Source of the DNA: Macrostomum hystrix
Taxonomy: Eukaryota; Animalia; Platyhelminthes
Direction: 5' to 3'
DNA length: 64,000 nt
NCBI GenBank assembly: GCA_950097015.1
Contig: CATNEN010000034.1
Location: 6,510,001-6,574,000 of the forward strand
Both the position numbers and the translations under genes were made by a program. The notes beneath the pieces are model-generated. The model was not told the DNA's origin and did no database searches. It saw only the letters and a list, made by a program, of their open reading frames with translations. Position 1 is the stretch's first letter; every line of letters starts with the position of its first letter. Shown in pieces: positions 5,464 to 14,099 of the stretch.

Positions 5464-7244
5464 ATGACCGGCAAGATCACTGAGTCTGCTCAGCCGGGTG
5501 AGGACCAACCGGTTCTGCTCTCCACTCGGTCAGGACTCCGTCTGAGAATGAGGCTACTCAGCCCCGATGAGGCTGAGCGCTACTTCTGGGTGGCCCTCAT
5601 GCCCTACTCGTGGACCAATAGGCGCTACGCTGAGATCATTGCCACCTGCTGGCCGGTGAGTACACTGGCGGAGTACAAATTGTAGCCTGCTAGGGTACTT
5701 GGCCAATGCTGTATGTGTACACTGGGTGCGCTTTATCGGCAGGGAAACTGTTTTTAGGCTGCTAAGAATTTGCTATTAGACAACTGTGTGCAGACAGGTA
5801 GGGAGACAGGTAGGCAGGTGAGCAGGCAGATGAGCAGGCAAGTGAGCAGGCAAGTGCGCAGGCAGGCAGGCTGCAGGTGAGCAGGCAGGCGGGCTTGCAG
5901 GTGAGCAGGCAGGCGGGCTTGCAGGTGAGCAGGCAGGCGGGCTTGCAGGTGAGCAGGCAGGTGAGCAGGCAGGCGGGCTTGCAGGTGAGCAGGCAGGTGA
6001 GCAGGCAGGCGGGCTTGCAGGTGAGCAGGCAGGTGAGCAGGCAGGCGGGCTTGCAGGTGAGCAGGCAGGTGAGCAGGCAGGCGGGCTTGCAGGTGAGCAG
6101 GCAGGTGAGCAGGCAGGCGGGCTTGCAGGTGAGCAGGCAGGTGAGCAGGCAGGCGGGCTTGTAGGTGAGCAGGCAGGCGGGCTTGCAGGTGAGCAGGCAG
6201 GTGAGCAGGCAGGCGGGCTTGCAGGTGAGCAGGCAGGCGGGCTTGCAGGTGAGCTCACTCATCCCGGCTGAGCCCCGCCAACCGCCCAGACTCGCATCGC
6301 CTGCGCATGCGTCTCCGTGGTGGCTGCCTGGCGCTGTCGGCCCGCCTGGCCTTGGCTCCTGGCCTGCGCGCTGACGCCCCCGACGCTGCTGCACAGCCTT
6401 CGGCTGCTGCTATGGCTGATCAGCACTCGCCGGCTGCCCGACTACGCCGACTTTGTCGGCTTCTGGTGCGGCCAAGGCTCCAACAGACTCTACGGAGTCT
6501 TCCTGGAGGACTGCGAGGGTGAGTCTGGAAACCCTGCCCGCGTAGGTCCGATTCCTGGCGTACCCAATGCCTGGATCCCATCGTGTCAGTCGAAATCTCA
6601 TAAGATATTGAGATCCCATTATCTATAGAGATCCCAATATTTATAAAAATCGCATTCTCTATGAAGATCCCATTCTCTATCAAGGTCTTTTTAGCTATTA
6701 AGATCCCCCCTTATCCATTAAGATCCCATTATCCATTAAGATCCCCCTTATCCATTAAGATCCCATTATCCATTAAGATCCCATTATCCATTAAGATCCC
6801 ATTATCCATTAAGATCCCATTATCCATTAAGATCCCATTATCCATTAAGATCCCATTATCCATTAAGATCCCATTATCCATTATGATCCCATTCTCCCAA
6901 TTCCCGCACTCCCAGCAGCCGCCGCCTCGCCGCCGCAGCTGATCGGCACGGTGGCCAGCCTGCATCTGGACGAAGGCACCTGCGAGCTGCAGCGACTCGC
7001 CGTGCTGCCCGGCCACCGCGGCCACGGCGTGGGCGAATCAGTCTGCCGCCGCCTGATGCGCCTCTGCGCCAGTCGCGGCTATCGCCGAATGCAGCTGGGC
7101 ACCACAGAGCTGCAGCGGTTCGCCATCGACATCTACGAGAAGCTGGGCTTCGTCCGCACCGGCCAGTTCCGCTCCATCATCCTGCCTGGCATCCCCATCT
7201 ACCGCTACGAGGCCCAGCTGCCAGCGACCGACGGGCTCGACTGA
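5464..7244 (+). CDS. GNAT N-acetyltransferase with hydrophobic segment (NAT8/camello-like); exons 5464-5655, 6290-6518, 6916-7244
   Basis: GTGAGT donors at 5656 and 6519 with frame-compatible acceptors. Acetyl-CoA motif A LAVLPGHRGHGVG and GTTELQRFAIDIYEKLGF. Hydrophobic stretch in exon 2 as in the NAT8 family. Confidence 0.85.
5795..6255. repeat. Intronic minisatellite of 12-bp subunits (GCAGGTGAGCAG / GCAGGCGGGCTT)
   Basis: Fills GNAT intron 1. Confidence 0.96.
6700..6895. repeat. 18-bp intronic minisatellite (ATTATCCATTAAGATCCC)
   Basis: In GNAT intron 2. Confidence 0.95.
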
Positions 7245-7329: not shown

Positions 7330-7580
7330 CACTACTAGAAGATGAAGAACAGGACACCTAGTTTCTTGGAAAAATTATTAAAAGGCAGATTTTCACGGAA
7401 AAATACATTAGCGAGATAGGGACTTTTCATTTTTAACTTTATTACTTTTTACTGGAAGCATATTTAATGCCGTTCGTTTAATATATCTTGAAAACCGTGT
7501 TGCATTCCGTGTTGCTTGAACGAATTTTAGAAAGTTTCATTCATAAATAACTGGTCTTGATTTTATTTTCGTTTATTTCA
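7330..7580 (+). mobile_element. Fragment of the non-autonomous DNA element also seen at 10685..11076
   Basis: Shares GTTTCTTGGAAAA...AGCGAGATAGG.ACTTTTCA and TTCGTTTATTT with 10695-10890; its first ~70 nt match the reverse complement of 11000-11068. Confidence 0.55.
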
Positions 7581-7582
7581 AT

Positions 7583-8195
7583 AGAGATCTCATAGTCGCT
7601 CATTAGAGATCTCATAGTCGCTCATTAGAGATCTCATAGTTACTCATTAGAGATCTCATAGTCACTCATTAGAGATCTCATAGTCACTCATTAGAGATAT
7701 TATAGTCACTCATTAGAGATCTTATAGTCACTCATTAGAGATCTCATAGTTACTCATTAGAGATCTCATAGTCGCTCAATAGAGATTTCATAGTTACTCA
7801 TTAGAGATCTCATAGTCGCTCAATAGAGATCTCATAGTTACTCAATAGAGATCTCATAGTCGCTCAATAGAGATTTCATAGTTACTCAATAGAGATCTCA
7901 TAGTCGCTCAATAGAGATTTCATAGTCACTCATTAGAGATCTCATAGTCGCTCAATAGAGATCTCATAGTTACTCATTAGAGATCTCATAGTCACTCATT
8001 AGAGATCTCATAGTCACTCATTAGAGATCTCATAGTCGCTCAATAGAGATCTCATAGTTACTCATTAGAGATCTCATAGTAACTCATTAGAGATCTCATA
8101 GTTACTCATAGAGATCTCATAGTAACTCATTAGAGATCTCATAGTCACTCATTAGAGACCTCATAGTCGCTCATTAGAGATCTCATAGTCGCTCA
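7583..8195. repeat. 22-bp minisatellite (TAGAGATCTCATAGTCACTCAT)
   Basis: Tandem array. Confidence 0.97.
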
Positions 8196-8439
8196 ATAAT
8201 CTGCATATAATCTGCTTGCCACACCTGAAGTTTGGATTTCCTGACAGGTGAGGCTGGGGTCAGTTCCACATGTCTTTTGTAGCAGTGAGTTCACAATACT
8301 TTCTTAGAATAGACTTGCTGCTCACCTTCAAGACTGAAATCCTTCACGTGTGGAACAAACATGAACTGACTGCATCAAACTGCATCCAATCTTCATCTCA
8401 GCTGCCCCCGAAAGCTAAATATGAATTCACTGATCCCTG

Positions 8440-9157
8440 ATGTGAGTGATCTGAGTGATCTGATCTGAGTGATCTGAGTGATCTGATCTGAGTGATCTGA
8501 GTGATCTGATCTCAGTGATGTGAGCGATCTGATCTCAGTGATCTCAGTGATCTGATGGGAGTGGTCTGATCTGAGTAATCTGAGTGATCTGGTTTGAGTG
8601 ATCTGAGTGATTTGAGTGGTCTGTGATCTGGTTTGAGTGATCTGAGTGATCTGAGTGATCTGAGTGATCTGGTTTGAGTGATCTGAGTGATCTGAGTGAT
8701 CTGGTTTGAGTGATCTGAGTAATCTGAGTGATCTGGTTTGAGTGATCTGAGTGATCTGAGTGATCTGGTTTGAGTGATCTGAGTGATCTGAGTGATCTGG
8801 TTTGAGTGATCTGAGTGATCTGGTTTGAGTGATCTGAGTGATTTGAGTGGTCTGTGATCTGGTTTGAGTGATCTGAGTGATCTGAGTGATCTGAGTGATC
8901 TGGTTTGAGTGATCTGAGTGATCTGAGTGATCTGGTTTGAGTGATCTGAGTGATCTGAGTGATCTGGTTTGAGTGATCTGAGTGATATGATTTGAGTGAT
9001 CTGAGTGATATGATTTGAGTGATCTGAGTGATATGATTTGAGTGATCTGAGTGATATGATTTGAGTGATCTGAGTGATATGATTTGAGTGATCTGAGTGA
9101 TATGATTTGAGTGATCTGAGTGATATGATTTGAGTGATCTGAGTGATCTGAGTGATT
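8440..9157. repeat. 9-bp-based composite minisatellite (GAGTGATCT with GGTTT / GATATGATTT spacers)
   Basis: Tandem array with block structure; source of the two repeat ORFs at 8393..9248. Confidence 0.96.
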
Positions 9158-9568
9158 TGCTGCCCGTGAGATCAATAGTCTTGCATTTTCTGAGGTGTAA
9201 AAAGCTGTCTAATTTGGCTCTCTTGTGTTTTTCATAAAGTGCAATCACAGCGGAGGTAAATGTATAAGTTATTTCCGTTTATTTATTTCTTTGGTCTGAA
9301 TTAATGGAAGAAAAAGCGAATCCGAGGCATGGAGGAAAGAATAGAATTCTATTCTTTCATGAATGTAAATTACGTGTATTATATGTTTATAGATATTGAC
9401 AACGACATTGGCGAGCTGAATATCTAAAATATGGTTTCATTCCAGCAAAAACCATGCTGATGTACGTATATAGAAGGGTCGCGGTATGAAGATTCCGTGG
9501 GGAGACCGCGGCAATTCCACGGTCCCTCCTCGAACGTCAAGCCTTCGCTAAAGTCCTGGTCAACTGAT

Positions 9569-10432
9569 ATGAAAACTATTTTCAACCATTGCATTATATT
9601 CATACGAGAGCTTCGAAAGACACTGCACTGCTTTCTAGTACTAAGGATGCAGCAAGCGGACATCACAAAAGATAAGTTTATCGATACAGTGAAAGACCGC
9701 ATTGGACAACAGGAGCTTGAAAGCTTGCGACAGTTGAAGCCATACTACTGCATCATGCGAGTTCTCCTGGTGCTGTGGTCCACAGACAGAAGGAACCTAG
9801 CTGAGAGTGAGCTGCAGAAGCTGCGCCATTCCCAGTCGGGCAGCGCTGTGGATGTTCACGAATTCACTTGGCTATTGTGGCACGAGTTGCATGTGAAGAC
9901 ATACTACGATTACGTAGGGCGCCACAAGTTTTACGTGAAGCGCTGCTACCAAATATTTAACAGTACGATAGTGACTAGAGTGAAGCCAGTCTTGCTGTCC
10001 GAAGGTCGATTGTCAAAGGAAATAGAGCCGACGAGGGACCCGACCGATCAGCAGATCGATTGTCACGACGACAGCAAGTACAGCTTCGAAGAGACTGTCA
10101 CCTATGCTCAGCGCTGGTTTCCGGACGAATGTCTAGGCCCATCAGACGAGCAGGCCTGGCAGAGAGGCCTGTGGCGGCACTACTGCTCAAATGAGCACCA
10201 CCCGCAGTTCTGGCGGGGTCGGGCCATGGCGTGGCGCAATCTAGTCGAGGCAGTCTATGACATGGCGGCGATGGAACTGGAGCGAAGGTTCGCCGGAGCA
10301 GTGCCGGATGATGTCAGTCGTCTTTTGGAGTTCGAGCTGGTGCATTTGGAACGATTTCGCGACACTGGCCAGTATGAGCTGATGCAACGGCTTCTGGTCA
10401 TCACCATAGAACAGGTGCGCCTGGCGAATTAA
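9569..10432 (+). CDS. Intronless DUF5662-like HD-superfamily protein (putative metal-dependent phosphohydrolase)
   Basis: Open frame 9497..10432 with first ATG at 9569. Motifs RHKFYV, CHDDSKYSFEE..TY, AW...RHYCSNEHHPQFW and LVEAVYDMAA follow the DUF5662 pattern as I recall it. AATAAA at 10449-10454. Confidence 0.72.
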   Translation: MKTIFNHCIIFIRELRKTLHCFLVLRMQQADITKDKFIDTVKDRIGQQELESLRQLKPYYCIMRVLLVLWSTDRRNLAESELQKLRHSQSGSAVDVHEFTWLLWHELHVKTYYDYVGRHKFYVKRCYQIFNSTIVTRVKPVLLSEGRLSKEIEPTRDPTDQQIDCHDDSKYSFEETVTYAQRWFPDECLGPSDEQAWQRGLWRHYCSNEHHPQFWRGRAMAWRNLVEAVYDMAAMELERRFAGAVPDDVSRLLEFELVHLERFRDTGQYELMQRLLVITIEQVRLAN

Positions 10433-10684
10433 AGTGGGTGCACTTCAAAATAAAACTTACGACAACTTTGCCGCACTCGTCATGCCCATTTGAACTATGC
10501 AGTATACCATGCAGCTAAGACCGATGTCTGTATATACAGTCAGTTTAAGTCAAATGAAAGCTATATGAAAATATATAATTAGTATGCGTTGCATCTGTCT
10601 TATTGTAAATCCTTTCGTCAACATTGGCATAATCTTAATACACGTAAGTTTGATGTAAATCCATTGATCAACCCCTTTACGTAC

Positions 10685-11076
10685 CAATTAGGACCACTAT
10701 AGAAGAGAATGGACGGCCGACACTTCGTTTCTTGGAAAATTCATATAGCGAGATAGGAACTTTTCACTTTTTACATTACATTTTTATAAATTTTTATGGG
10801 TAACAAAACCCAATGCTGTTCTTTTAATTTATCTTGTTGTTTTTTTCATAAATAGTTGATCTTCATTTCATCTTCGTTTATTTATCATGAAGCACGCATA
10901 GCAACCAATTAGACATAAAATTTGCCTATATAGCTTGGATTTTTTAAGTGACTGTATAACCCTGAGTTGACTTTTGACTATAGCACAGCTAATTGTAAAA
11001 ACACTAGAAAATCTGCCTTTAATAATTTTTCAAGAAACGAGGTATCCTGTCCTTCCATATGCAGTGGTCCTGATTG
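10685..11076. mobile_element. MITE-like element with imperfect terminal inverted repeats
   Basis: CAATTAGGACCACT...GTTTCTTGGAAAATT at the left end versus reverse complement CAATCAGGACCACT...GTTTCTTGAAAAATT at the right end. Confidence 0.6.
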
Positions 11077-12139
11077 TTCCGCAGTTACATAATTGTAAAC
11101 GAGTAAATTTACAGTAGACTAGACTATTTTGCCTTCAATACAAGTGCAATGGGGTTATGAATTTCACACCTTGGCGAATCGTCATCGTCATAGTCGATTT
11201 CGACCTTTTCGAGAAACATTCAACTCCAATTAGTTATTTTTTAAATGGTGTCCCGGTTATTAAGCGAAGCCACGTCTCGTGCCTACATGTCTACATAGAC
11301 ATTATGTATATCGCTACTACAGCATGTAATCCACCCATATTTACTGCTGTCATTTGTTTATTTCATCCATGAAGGCTTGGGTAAAATTTGAAGAGGCTCA
11401 AAAGACATACAGAACATCACAAAGATAATGTTCATGATTGATCCTAACAACTTACTTCAAAATGTCTGTCTCATCTAATTTCGACTAAAAAGAGAGTTTC
11501 GTTTACTTTGTTATTCAGCCATTTCAAAATCCTAGCCTCGCCACTGCTCCAGTGGTCCGTGCATTATACATCGGTTATGTATTACAGAAAATACATGTTT
11601 TTTTTGAAAAAAAAACCTAACAGCAATTTTTTATAGCCAACTCTGGCAATGATAGTTGATTGAAAGAAAATTACTGACGTATAAAAATCACTTTGCATCT
11701 GAATGAAGCAGAAATTGATGAGTCACAAATTTTTTTAAAGCTTTGATTCACTAATGAAATTTTATTTAAATAACAAATAAATAACAATTATAATATTCGA
11801 TGACCAAAAGATTAAGAAAAAAGCAGGAACAGTCTTCAGTAGTCAATCAAGCGTTTTTATTGCATGACCAAAGGTTGCCAGACAACAATAAAGCGACTAA
11901 AAACACGAGTAACTTGCTTTGTTATATTATCTGTTGGCGCCAATTCAAACTGATGGACATTTATCACATCTAATCATCTATCCGATTATGCTTAATTAAT
12001 AAAATGTCGTAGGGAATCAGAGACCACATCTGAAAATTGATAAATGAACTTACTAAGAAGTTATAAATTAGAGTAGAGCAGATACGTGGAATTAGTGTAA
12101 GAGTCAAAGTGGCGTTTCTTGAAAATAAGATCGTGTCCT

Positions 12140-14099
12140 TTAGCACTTCTTGATCAAGCTGGCCGCCTCCTTCTTGGCCTGTGGAACAATGAGTTCTAAG
12201 AGTTATTGCGCCAACAGCGAGCATCAGAGCGATGGATTCAGTTCCGGAATCTAAATCTAGAATGTTGGTGGCCTAACCCGAGAGCCTTGTACGTCTAACC
12301 AGGGGGTTTGATCCGCAGATGGTCTTACCTGGGGATCTGGGAGGGAGGTGGTCTTAACTGGGGATCTGGGAGGCAGGTGGTCTTAACTGGGGATCTGGGA
12401 GGCAGGTGGGCTTTCCTGGGGATTTGAGAGGCAGGTGGTCTTACCTGAGGATCTGGGAGGCAGGTGGCCTTAACTGGCGATCTGGGAGGCAGGTGGTCTT
12501 ACCTGAGGATCTGGGAGGGAGGTGGTCTTAACTGGGGATCTGGAAGGTTGGTGGCCTTAACTGGGGATCTGGGAGGCAGGCGGTCTTAACTGGGGATCTG
12601 GGAGGCAAGGGGTCTAACTTGGGGATCTGGAAGGCTGGTGGCCTTAACTGGGGATCTGGAAGGCAGGTGGCCTTAACTGGGGATCTGGAAGGCAGGTGGC
12701 CTTAACTGGGGATCTGGGAGGCAGGCGGTCTTACCTGGGGATCTGGGAGGCAGGCGGTCTTAACTGGGGATCTGGGAGGCAGGTGGCCTTAACTGGGGAT
12801 CTGGGAGGCAGGTGGTCTTACCTGAGGATCTGGGAGGGAGGTGGTCTTAACTGGGGATCTGGGAGGCAGGTGGTCTTACCTGAGGATCTGGGAGGCAGGT
12901 GGCCTTAACTGGGGATCTGGAAGGCTGGTGGCCTTAACTGGGGATCTGGAAGGCTGGTGGCCTTAACTGGGGATCTGGGAGGCAGGCGGTCTTAACTTGG
13001 GATCTGGGAGGCAGGCGGTCTTAACTAGGGATCTGGGAGGCAAGGGGTCTAACTTGGGGATCTGGAAGGCTGGTGGCCTTAACAGGGGATCTGGGAGACA
13101 GACGTTCTTAATTGGAGATCTGGGAGGCGGGCGGTCTAACCTGGGGATCTGGATGGTATGCAGTGGTCTTAGCTGGGGATCTGGAGGGCAAGTGGTCTGA
13201 CCAGTGGACCACAGCGCACTCAGTTCTTACCTCACGGTCGTCGTGTCCGTCGGCTGGGTGGTCGATAGTCTTCTGGAAGAACTCACGCGCCTCCGGCAGC
13301 TTCTTGAGCTGATAGTAGGTCTTGCCAATGTAATTCAGGTTCGAGACGTAGAAACTCGGACTGGCTGCAATACGAGGGGGTTCGAAATGCATTGGGGGAT
13401 TAAGAGGCGAAACTATGAAATCACGCAATTCGAGTTGTCCCTCATACTGCTCCAGCATTCGAGTTTTCAGAGCATTAAAGTTTGATAGTCTGAACTGAAA
13501 GCCTTAGCAAAGCTTGGCAAAGCGAACTAACCTTTCTCGGCTCGCAGCAGATAGTCCAGCGCCTCCTCGTAGGTGGAGGTTGGCGGCTTGGCGAAGAAGG
13601 CCGCGGCCATGTTGCGCTGCAGCCAGGATAGGCTGGTAACCTCGTAGCACCAGACGCCGAGGCAGTGCAGCACAACTGCATCGTTCGGCTGCTTGTCCAG
13701 AGCCTTGGTGAAATGCTCCTTGACTAGGAAGGAGTTCTCAATGCGCTTCTTGATGCCCTCGAAGCGGCCGGTGAGGTCCAGCAGGATGCCCATCCACTTG
13801 TGGCAGCACCAGTTATCAGGCTCGGCTGCCAAGCCCTTCTTAGCCGCATCGAATGCCTCATAGATGAGCACCTTACGCCTGTCCTCGCCATCCGAGCAGC
13901 TGTTGGCCAAGGCGCGGCATTCACGTGCCAGACGCCAATAGATTTCGGCGCTCTCATGGCCAGCAGAAATTTCGGCTTTAAGCTTATTGCGAGCCTCCTC
14001 CTCCTTGGCAGCACTGTGCAGTTCGTCCACGGCAGTTAGAAAATCCGAAGTATTGCCCGACTCTGCCATTGTACTACTGTTCCAATATGAAACTGACAT
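12140..14099 (-). CDS. RMDN1: Regulator of microtubule dynamics protein 1 (TPR-like); exons 14099-13532, 13374-13231, 12178-12140
   Basis: Family motifs YWRLAR, CHKWMGILL, RIENSFLVKEHFTKA, LHCLGVWCYEV, FAKPPTSTYEEALDYLLRAE. GT/AG junctions give ...DDRE|AKKEAASLIKKC*. Start may be the second Met (14069). Confidence 0.93.
12318..13200. repeat. 29-bp intronic minisatellite (TGGTCTTAACTGGGGATCTGGGAGGCAGG)
   Basis: Fills the last RMDN1 intron. Confidence 0.97.

Follow-up and report, generated by a model that had tools for sequence, protein, structure and literature searches.

Gene Structure and Transcription

The 64-kb stretch of Macrostomum hystrix DNA analysed here (the window) carries on its plus strand an intact gene for a protein of the DUF5662 family. 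The reading frame can be taken from GTG 9497 or ATG 9569, runs to the TAA at 10430–10432, contains a further ATG at 9647, and is uninterrupted up to its last nucleotide at 10432, as had been stated in an earlier reading of the letters alone (the sequence-only reading). The in-frame stretch 9569–9646, counted as coding in that reading, is probably 5′ UTR from about 9593, and the DNA further upstream is probably untranscribed or rarely transcribed, to judge from where the contigs described below begin and from a contig depth of zero across 9160–9583. The first ATG within the three RNA-like contigs is 9647. In addition, four of the five homologues in the same clade begin 6–8 residues ahead of a conserved KF(I/L)xTV block, matching a start at 9647; the Macrostomum lignano protein as called is about 13 residues longer upstream than the equivalent of this start. 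ATG 9569 was rejected as the start codon because it lies outside all three contigs and because the homologues start at the equivalent of 9647. The coding sequence is therefore most likely a single exon of 261 codons plus TAA at 9647–10432 (plus strand), and residue numbers below refer to this 261-amino-acid protein.

The protein consists of an N-terminal helical extension of four helices (residues 1–84; 9647–9898) and a predicted DUF5662/HD-like catalytic domain (residues 85–261; 9899–10429), delimited by Pfam and by VIA-align structural matches that span residues 85–261. The extension had earlier been put at about 110 residues; its helical nature is borne out by AlphaFold2 (AF2) modelling, and its length shrinks to about 84 residues with the start at 9647. 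The rest of the flatworm-type clade has the same extension, as do both modules of a scallop protein (alignment and AF2), and in BLASTP the window protein aligns to scallop module 2 from near its N-terminus.

The gene and its surroundings are present in nine public sequencing runs, none of which is recorded as RNA; those compared are contig sets, so that expression level is unreadable from their depth. In three of them, a single contig covers the gene without gaps or joints (X2, 9593–10752; X3, 9598–10752; X6, 9615–10772), X2 and X3 coming from one study and X6 from another. The X2 contig (1160 nt, plus strand) is transcript-like and unspliced, and has no differences from the genome. A second contig in each of these runs covers 11753–12180 and then jumps to the sequence at 13233 of the window; the junction can slide by 2 nt, a shift that leaves the skipped sequence bounded by GT..AG on the minus strand. 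Because an intron of the neighboring gene has thus been removed in X2, X3, and X6, the contigs derive from RNA, and because the contigs of the DUF5662 gene in these RNA-derived sets are collinear with the genome, the gene is transcribed and has no intron. The absence of introns claimed from the letters is thereby upheld in three runs of two studies.

An AATAAA hexamer is located at 10449–10454 on the plus strand, 16 nt past the stop codon. The contigs read through it and extend about 320 nt past the stop, which indicates that it is not the sole 3′ end signal, if it is used at all. Two sequence variants were found, both synonymous and at third codon positions (9745 C>T in X6; 10195 G>A in X9). 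Run X9, which carries the label of another organism, includes 259 nt of the gene (window 10025–10283) with one synonymous difference; this piece could stem from a close relative, a mislabel, or carry-over.

Genomic Neighborhood

The gene sits between tandem-repeat arrays (7578–9156) and a gene of the RMD1-3 (regulator of microtubule dynamics) family, which lies 1.3 kb downstream on the minus strand at 11753–14099, with its 3′ end facing the DUF5662 gene (PF21033, E 4.6e-22; Pfam and contigs). The first coding exon of the RMD1-3 gene lies at about 13530–14069, its intron extends from about 12179/12181 to 13230/13232 and is filled by a 29-bp × 30 tandem array (12315–13198), and its last exon ends near 11753. 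The description of the DUF5662 gene as embedded among spliced animal genes thus applies to this downstream neighbor, whose intron is removed in three runs. Within the same runs, contig depth over the RMD1-3 gene is about ten times that over the DUF5662 gene, a ratio of contigs and not of expression levels. Upstream, the arrays comprise repeats of 24/36/60 bp (6000–6254), 18 bp × 16 (6607–6897), 22 bp × 28 (7578–8195), and 9/23/32 bp (8437–9156), the last of which yields long spurious minus-strand open reading frames (8393–9248). Neither a second copy of the DUF5662 gene nor any other virus-like open reading frame was found in the 64-kb window.

The composition of the DUF5662 reading frame (GC 0.535; GC3 0.66) is like that of host exons and of the other long coding frames of the window, and the GC content of its flanks is 0.35–0.39. 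Among named relatives, the best match is a hypothetical M. lignano protein with 47% identity; its gene is intact, has a single exon, and is flanked on its 179-kb contig by genes for a BTK-type tyrosine kinase on one side and a Rab5-bind/FYVE protein on the other. Conserved synteny in related species had been suggested as a check on the gene's history; the flanks of the window locus and of the M. lignano locus share nothing.

DUF5662 Assignment and Invariant Residues

The assignment to DUF5662, made originally from motifs in the translation, is confirmed by a Pfam match to PF18907 (E 2.6e-18, 66.5 bits), which spans residues 110–239 of the 287-residue reading that starts at 9569. With a gathering cut-off of 27 bits and scores of 66.5–66.8 bits for the window protein, this match is far beyond chance. 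NCBIfam gave no match for the window protein, and the best PHROGs match had an E value of only 0.27. Relatives at E ≤ 0.001 numbered 405 when 1.84 billion cluster representatives were searched by profile, with a large drop in score after the first five strong matches. All 86 aligned relatives match DUF5662 in Pfam, and none of the 86 members matches any Pfam HD model at E ≤ 5.

Each motif named in the sequence-only reading was found (RHK, HDDSKY, EETVTY, W.H...NEHHP..W, and EAVYDMAA). Invariant throughout the 86-sequence alignment are H93, H140, D141, K144, Y153, H178, H184, H185, and D205, and the window protein has every family-wide invariant (H, HD.SK, Y, H, HHP, D). On the plus strand, the codon of H93, the first predicted metal ligand, lies at 9923–9925; the HDDSK motif, which contains the H140–D141 dyad, S143, and K144, lies at 10064–10078, and in it the H, D, and K are fully invariant and the S nearly so. 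The segment from H178 through Asn-Glu to H184–H185 (10178–10201) supplies the predicted third to fifth histidine ligands (H...HH), and the codon of D205, the last predicted metal ligand, lies at 10259–10261. The invariant set is kept in the flatworm-type clade, in both scallop modules, in both modules of two decapod proteins, and in a majanivirus, as well as in two picorna-like polyproteins, a chytrid, and the phage-type members. A reovirus VP1 protein keeps the set except for the first histidine, which is unaligned at the H93 column.

DUF5662 is a family without a described function, and in a literature search for DUF5662/PF18907 no paper was found that mentions it; a search with the name of the reovirus likewise gave nothing useful.

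Viral and Animal Members

That phages and large DNA viruses carry the family had been stated in the sequence-only reading, and members were found in both. Among RNA viruses, two environmental picorna-like polyproteins (P0054, 2741 aa; P0147, 1933 aa) have DUF5662 among their helicase, 3C protease, and RdRp domains and keep all seven candidate metal ligands, and the VP1 protein of the dsRNA virus Drosophila Glencorse burn reovirus (P0067, 905 aa) has the domain at its C-terminus. The nimavirus-like Metapenaeus joyneri majanivirus encodes a 723-residue protein with two DUF5662 modules (P0061), which cluster with the modules of two-module decapod proteins (Palaemon carinicauda and Cherax quadricarinatus); these decapod copies might be parts of endogenous viral elements. 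The source of another member (P0022) resembles a large eukaryotic DNA virus, since its contig carries Bro-N/T5orf172 and HMG-box genes. In the scallop Mizuhopecten yessoensis, the whole module (extension plus DUF5662) is tandemly duplicated in LOC110453791 (P0006/P0156), with the catalytic-type residues kept in each copy.

Most relatives are unlabelled environmental sequences, and the named eukaryotes among the 30 clusters looked up are only four animal species and one chytrid. One relative of full flatworm-type architecture, with 43% identity to the window protein, is labelled ‘MAG: DUF5662 family protein [Kangiellaceae bacterium]’ (P0003/P0152; MEE4248734.1; JGI sample 3300040801). The label is unreliable because the contig is only 1160 bp, and the sequence is probably a mis-binned eukaryotic fragment; given in addition its architecture and the lack of any similar protein in the prokaryote genomes scanned, it was rejected as evidence of a bacterial donor.

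Several further searches added little. A word-index protein search gave 15 matches, mostly unnamed, with a 61-sequence profile and nothing with the domain alone, and tblastn of the flatworm domain against 50,697 phage records gave no match; the flatworm form is too distant from the phage forms for BLAST. All 72 loci from a metagenome scan match only the conserved core, with identities of at most 42%, and none is a close relative of the flatworm clade. About fifty of the distinct short-DUF5662 loci (L010–L081; contigs JAEIGA01...) come from one metagenome assembly, and the sole locus inspected (L021) lies on a 90-kb contig of that assembly with dense, one-strand, phage-like coding. When 185,579 prokaryote species genomes were scanned with peptide patterns, one or two for each type, no flatworm-type or scallop/chytrid-type relative came up, and IMG/VR gave one weak locus.

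Phylogeny of the Family

Two trees were built, with FastTree for 156 domains and with IQ-TREE under PMSF for 83 rows, and both split the family in two. One half consists of short proteins (about 165–210 aa), the labelled or inspected members of which are phage-like. All the named eukaryotes and eukaryotic viruses fall in the other half (SH-aLRT 100): the flatworms, scallop, decapods, chytrid, nimavirus, reovirus VP1, and picorna-like polyproteins. Its first branch is the flatworm-type clade (SH-aLRT 87), which consists of the window protein, the M. lignano protein, and four environmental clusters, and which stands apart from the scallop and decapods, its nearest neighbors being unlabelled. The decapod-plus-majanivirus clade (SH-aLRT 99) shares a subclade with the scallop and P0022, and in the free trees the chytrid and picorna-like virus rows group with the other animals and not with the flatworms. 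In an AU test, a single clade of the named animals, apart from the chytrid, picorna-like virus, and phage rows, was not rejected (p 0.355).

Nesting of the animal sequences within a phage or bacterial clade, proposed as a test of horizontal transfer, was not found: the flatworm protein belongs to the separate branch of eukaryotes and eukaryotic viruses, and the trees identify no donor clade. The earlier suggestion of horizontal acquisition accordingly gains from the patchy distribution, the absence of an intron, and the many viral relatives, and loses from the lack of nesting and from the AU result. Horizontal acquisition of the flatworm gene is plausible, the donor, the direction, and even the event itself being inferred, and any conclusion is limited by the large share of relatives that carry no label.

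Predicted Fold and Probable Relationship to HD-Domain Enzymes

The AF2 model is all-helical (pLDDT 97, pTM 0.92), both for the whole protein and for the domain alone, and the four helices of the 84-residue extension (8–16 residues each, pLDDT 94–98) are modelled together with the domain. A phage DUF5662 cluster from the ESM Atlas superposes on the flatworm model with a TM score of 0.72 (phage row; 165 residues aligned, rmsd 3.2), and the fold agreement with the phage DUF5662 members reaches a feature score of 0.95. The short phage proteins and the flatworm protein have the same HMM match, invariant residues, and predicted fold, whereas the flatworm protein differs in its extra 84-residue helical N-terminus, its longer C-terminal tail, and its separate branch in the trees.

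Neither the full nor the domain-only model gave a Foldseek match in the PDB at E < 1, and PDB sequences searched by profile gave no match either, HD chains included. VIA-align was run against 48,161 representative chains; with the domain-only model, the top eight rows are all HD-type, as are about half of the 50 rows. The top rows are PgpH (Z 6.5, 147 residues aligned) and the HD-GYP protein DvhD (Z 6.3, 139 aligned), followed by Bd1817 (Z 5.6), PA4781 (Z 5.5, 149 aligned), PH0347 (Z 5.2), and PmGH (Z 4.9), and the weaker rows include PPX/GppA, V-cGAP3, OxsA, YqeK, DatZ, Cas3-HD, YfbR, and HDOD proteins. The Z scores of the HD rows are only 4–6.5, and the tool describes values of 5–6.5 in helical proteins as possibly ‘only a common arrangement’; despite these low values, the concentration of the HD superfamily at the top of this model-based list is striking.

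In HD-domain phosphodiesterases, the motif H...HD...H...HH...D binds a two- or three-metal center; in PgpH, the ligands are H514, H543, D544, H580, H604, H605, and D648 (PMC8177086). The extra adjacent histidine is the seventh ligand of the HD-GYP proteins, and oxygenases and YqeK use six (PMC8177086). The seven-ligand motif is present in the flatworm protein as H93, H140, D141, H178, H184, H185, and D205, and the H...HD...D motif of the HD superfamily is present as the invariant H93, H140–D141, and D205. The HD-related character proposed from the letters is thus supported by the invariant H..HD..H..HH..D pattern and, at low Z scores, by the HD-type top structural matches. DUF5662 is predicted to be a very divergent HD-type two-metal phosphodiesterase because its invariants reproduce the seven-ligand pattern. 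A (d)NTP/NMP hydrolase, as suggested earlier, is less probable than a phosphodiesterase, since it is to phosphodiesterases that the seven-ligand motif belongs.

The c-di-AMP phosphodiesterase PgpH (HD domain, 4S1B) and the HD-GYP proteins (DvhD, PA4781, PmGH, and Bd1817) have the same order and number of candidate ligands and an HDxxK motif, and are the best structural matches of the flatworm model (126–149 residues aligned, at Z scores of only 5–6.5). By contrast, the flatworm protein has no sequence-profile similarity to them and lacks the GYP triad and a 7TM or receiver partner, and the spacing from H178 to the HH pair is 6 residues, compared with 24 in PgpH. An HD-GYP identity was rejected since the 261-residue translation contains no GYP, the HH pair being followed by P-Q-F-W, and a PgpH (7TMR-HD) identity was rejected since Pfam detects no membrane module and the extension is four short helices. 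The comparison with PgpH and the HD-GYP proteins is one of probable working and not a claim of membership.

Proposed Mechanism and Alternative Explanations

The account that we favor, with somewhat better than even confidence, is that of a resident, transcribed gene for a predicted DUF5662 HD-type two-metal phosphodiesterase that was gained horizontally, probably via a virus, and has been kept under constraint. The product would be a soluble, all-helical protein in which an 84-residue helical extension precedes the DUF5662 domain. In this domain, H93, H140–D141, H178, H184–H185, and D205 would hold a two-metal center as in PgpH and the HD-GYP proteins, and K144 of the HDxSK motif may contact phosphate. 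The likeliest chemistry would be that of a metal-dependent hydrolase acting on a phosphodiester of a nucleotide-derived substrate, for which a cyclic di- or oligonucleotide, a 2′,3′-cyclic phosphate, and the end of a short oligonucleotide are candidates. The gene would most likely have reached the Macrostomum lineage horizontally, probably carried by a virus, at a time before M. lignano split off, and would have been kept under constraint after its entry.

As to chemistry, an HD fold could instead serve a diiron oxygenase (such as MIOX, PhnZ, or TmpB) or a phosphatase or dNTPase (such as YfbR, YqeK, or SAMHD1). HD chemistry is not readable from the motif alone, two-metal sites being present also in oxygenases and YqeK (PMC8177086), and YqeK, OxsA, YfbR, and DatZ are among the weaker structural matches. 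However, oxygenases and YqeK have six ligands (H..HD..H..H..D), the HH pair that marks phosphodiesterases (PMC8177086) is invariant in DUF5662, and the best and longest structural matches are phosphodiesterases. A dNTPase would in addition be an odd cargo in RNA-virus polyproteins, and we regard these other chemistries as very doubtful. As to origin, an old eukaryotic or animal gene, inherited vertically with many losses and captured from hosts by viruses, would agree with the AU test, which does not reject a clade of flatworms, scallop, and decapods, with the wide separation of the eukaryote-type branch from the phage branch, with the shared N-terminal extension of the scallop modules, and with the fully host-like composition of the gene; viral capture of host phosphodiesterases also has a precedent in the 2H family (PMC10515750). 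Among the 30 clusters looked up, such descent would be represented by no more than one chytrid and four named animal species, and in the free trees the flatworm clade is not sister to the other animals, with which the chytrid and picorna-like rows group. Moreover, the gene is intronless in both Macrostomum species next to spliced neighbors, and the two loci have no synteny in their flanks. Vertical descent is on these grounds a serious but unlikely account.

What is left of an endogenous viral element, or else a contaminant contig, in either case without host function, would be in line with the clustering of the decapod copies with the majanivirus, the missing intron, and the tandem repeats on the flank. 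The frame is nevertheless intact with all catalytic-type residues kept, it is transcribed in runs of two studies, its codon composition is host-like, and the spliced RMD1-3 gene lies 1.3 kb away on the same contig. An intact copy with 47% identity is present among animal genes in M. lignano, and the window is free of other virus-like frames and of a second copy. Contamination was rejected on the linkage to a spliced host gene and the host-like composition, and this explanation as a whole is highly improbable.

Substrate Clues and Comparison With Known Systems

Several members of the phage-type half of the family are fusion proteins. DUF5662 is fused to DHH and DHHA1 domains in P0077, and in P0090 and P0129 to the HAD domain of ‘Swiss Army Knife’ RNA repair proteins. 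In P0049, it is joined to a phage NTP_transf_2-like part (Pfam 18.1, below the cut-off of 21), and, as a weaker case, P0149 has two DUF5662 modules behind a P-loop/NB-ARC-like N-terminus. PADLOC gave nothing, save weak PDC-S09 matches on the nucleotidyltransferase part of P0049. A further phage-type member lies on a contig of about 230 kb that resembles a jumbo phage, with RtcB, Fic, and RecQ-like helicase genes nearby. These fusions and neighbors fit a nucleotide or RNA-end phosphoester chemistry, and fix no single substrate.

The architecture of P0049 recalls that of the bacterial CCA-adding enzymes (nucleotidyltransferase plus HD), whereas the flatworm protein has no nucleotidyltransferase part. 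The HD domain of bacterial CCA-adding enzymes has 2′,3′-cyclic phosphodiesterase and phosphatase activity. The spread of DUF5662 over hosts and RNA viruses is similar to that of the 2H phosphoesterases, which include AKAP7, the C-terminal domain of rotavirus VP3, and coronavirus ns2/NS4b (PMC10515750, PMC8406329). Like them, DUF5662 is a small domain, predicted to be a phosphoesterase, that occurs in RNA-repair contexts, in hosts, and in RNA-virus proteins; the fold and catalytic motif of the two families are unrelated.

A bolder and quite doubtful extension of these comparisons is that viruses and hosts have exchanged DUF5662 as a phosphodiesterase that destroys the nucleotide messengers of immunity (cGAMP-like, 2-5A-like, or cyclic oligonucleotides). 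If so, the phages, picorna-like viruses, reovirus, and nimaviruses would carry DUF5662 as an immune antagonist, and the copies in Macrostomum, scallop, and decapods, whether captured or ancestral, would now tune the nucleotide signaling of the host.

Significance

With the seven-ligand pattern, DUF5662 gains a testable mechanism, that of a predicted two-metal, HD-type phosphodiesterase. Its host range is unusual, comprising phages, the polyproteins of +ssRNA viruses, the VP1 protein of a dsRNA virus, large DNA viruses of invertebrates, and a few animals. M. lignano is a laboratory flatworm amenable to RNAi, and a role in the host can be tested directly there because a homologue is present. Should the substrate prove to be a nucleotide of immunity or of RNA ends, DUF5662 would add a new case of phosphodiesterases that hosts and viruses exchange. 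Taken alone, the flatworm gene is one more member of the Pfam family DUF5662, and the family-wide pattern is the more interesting lead.
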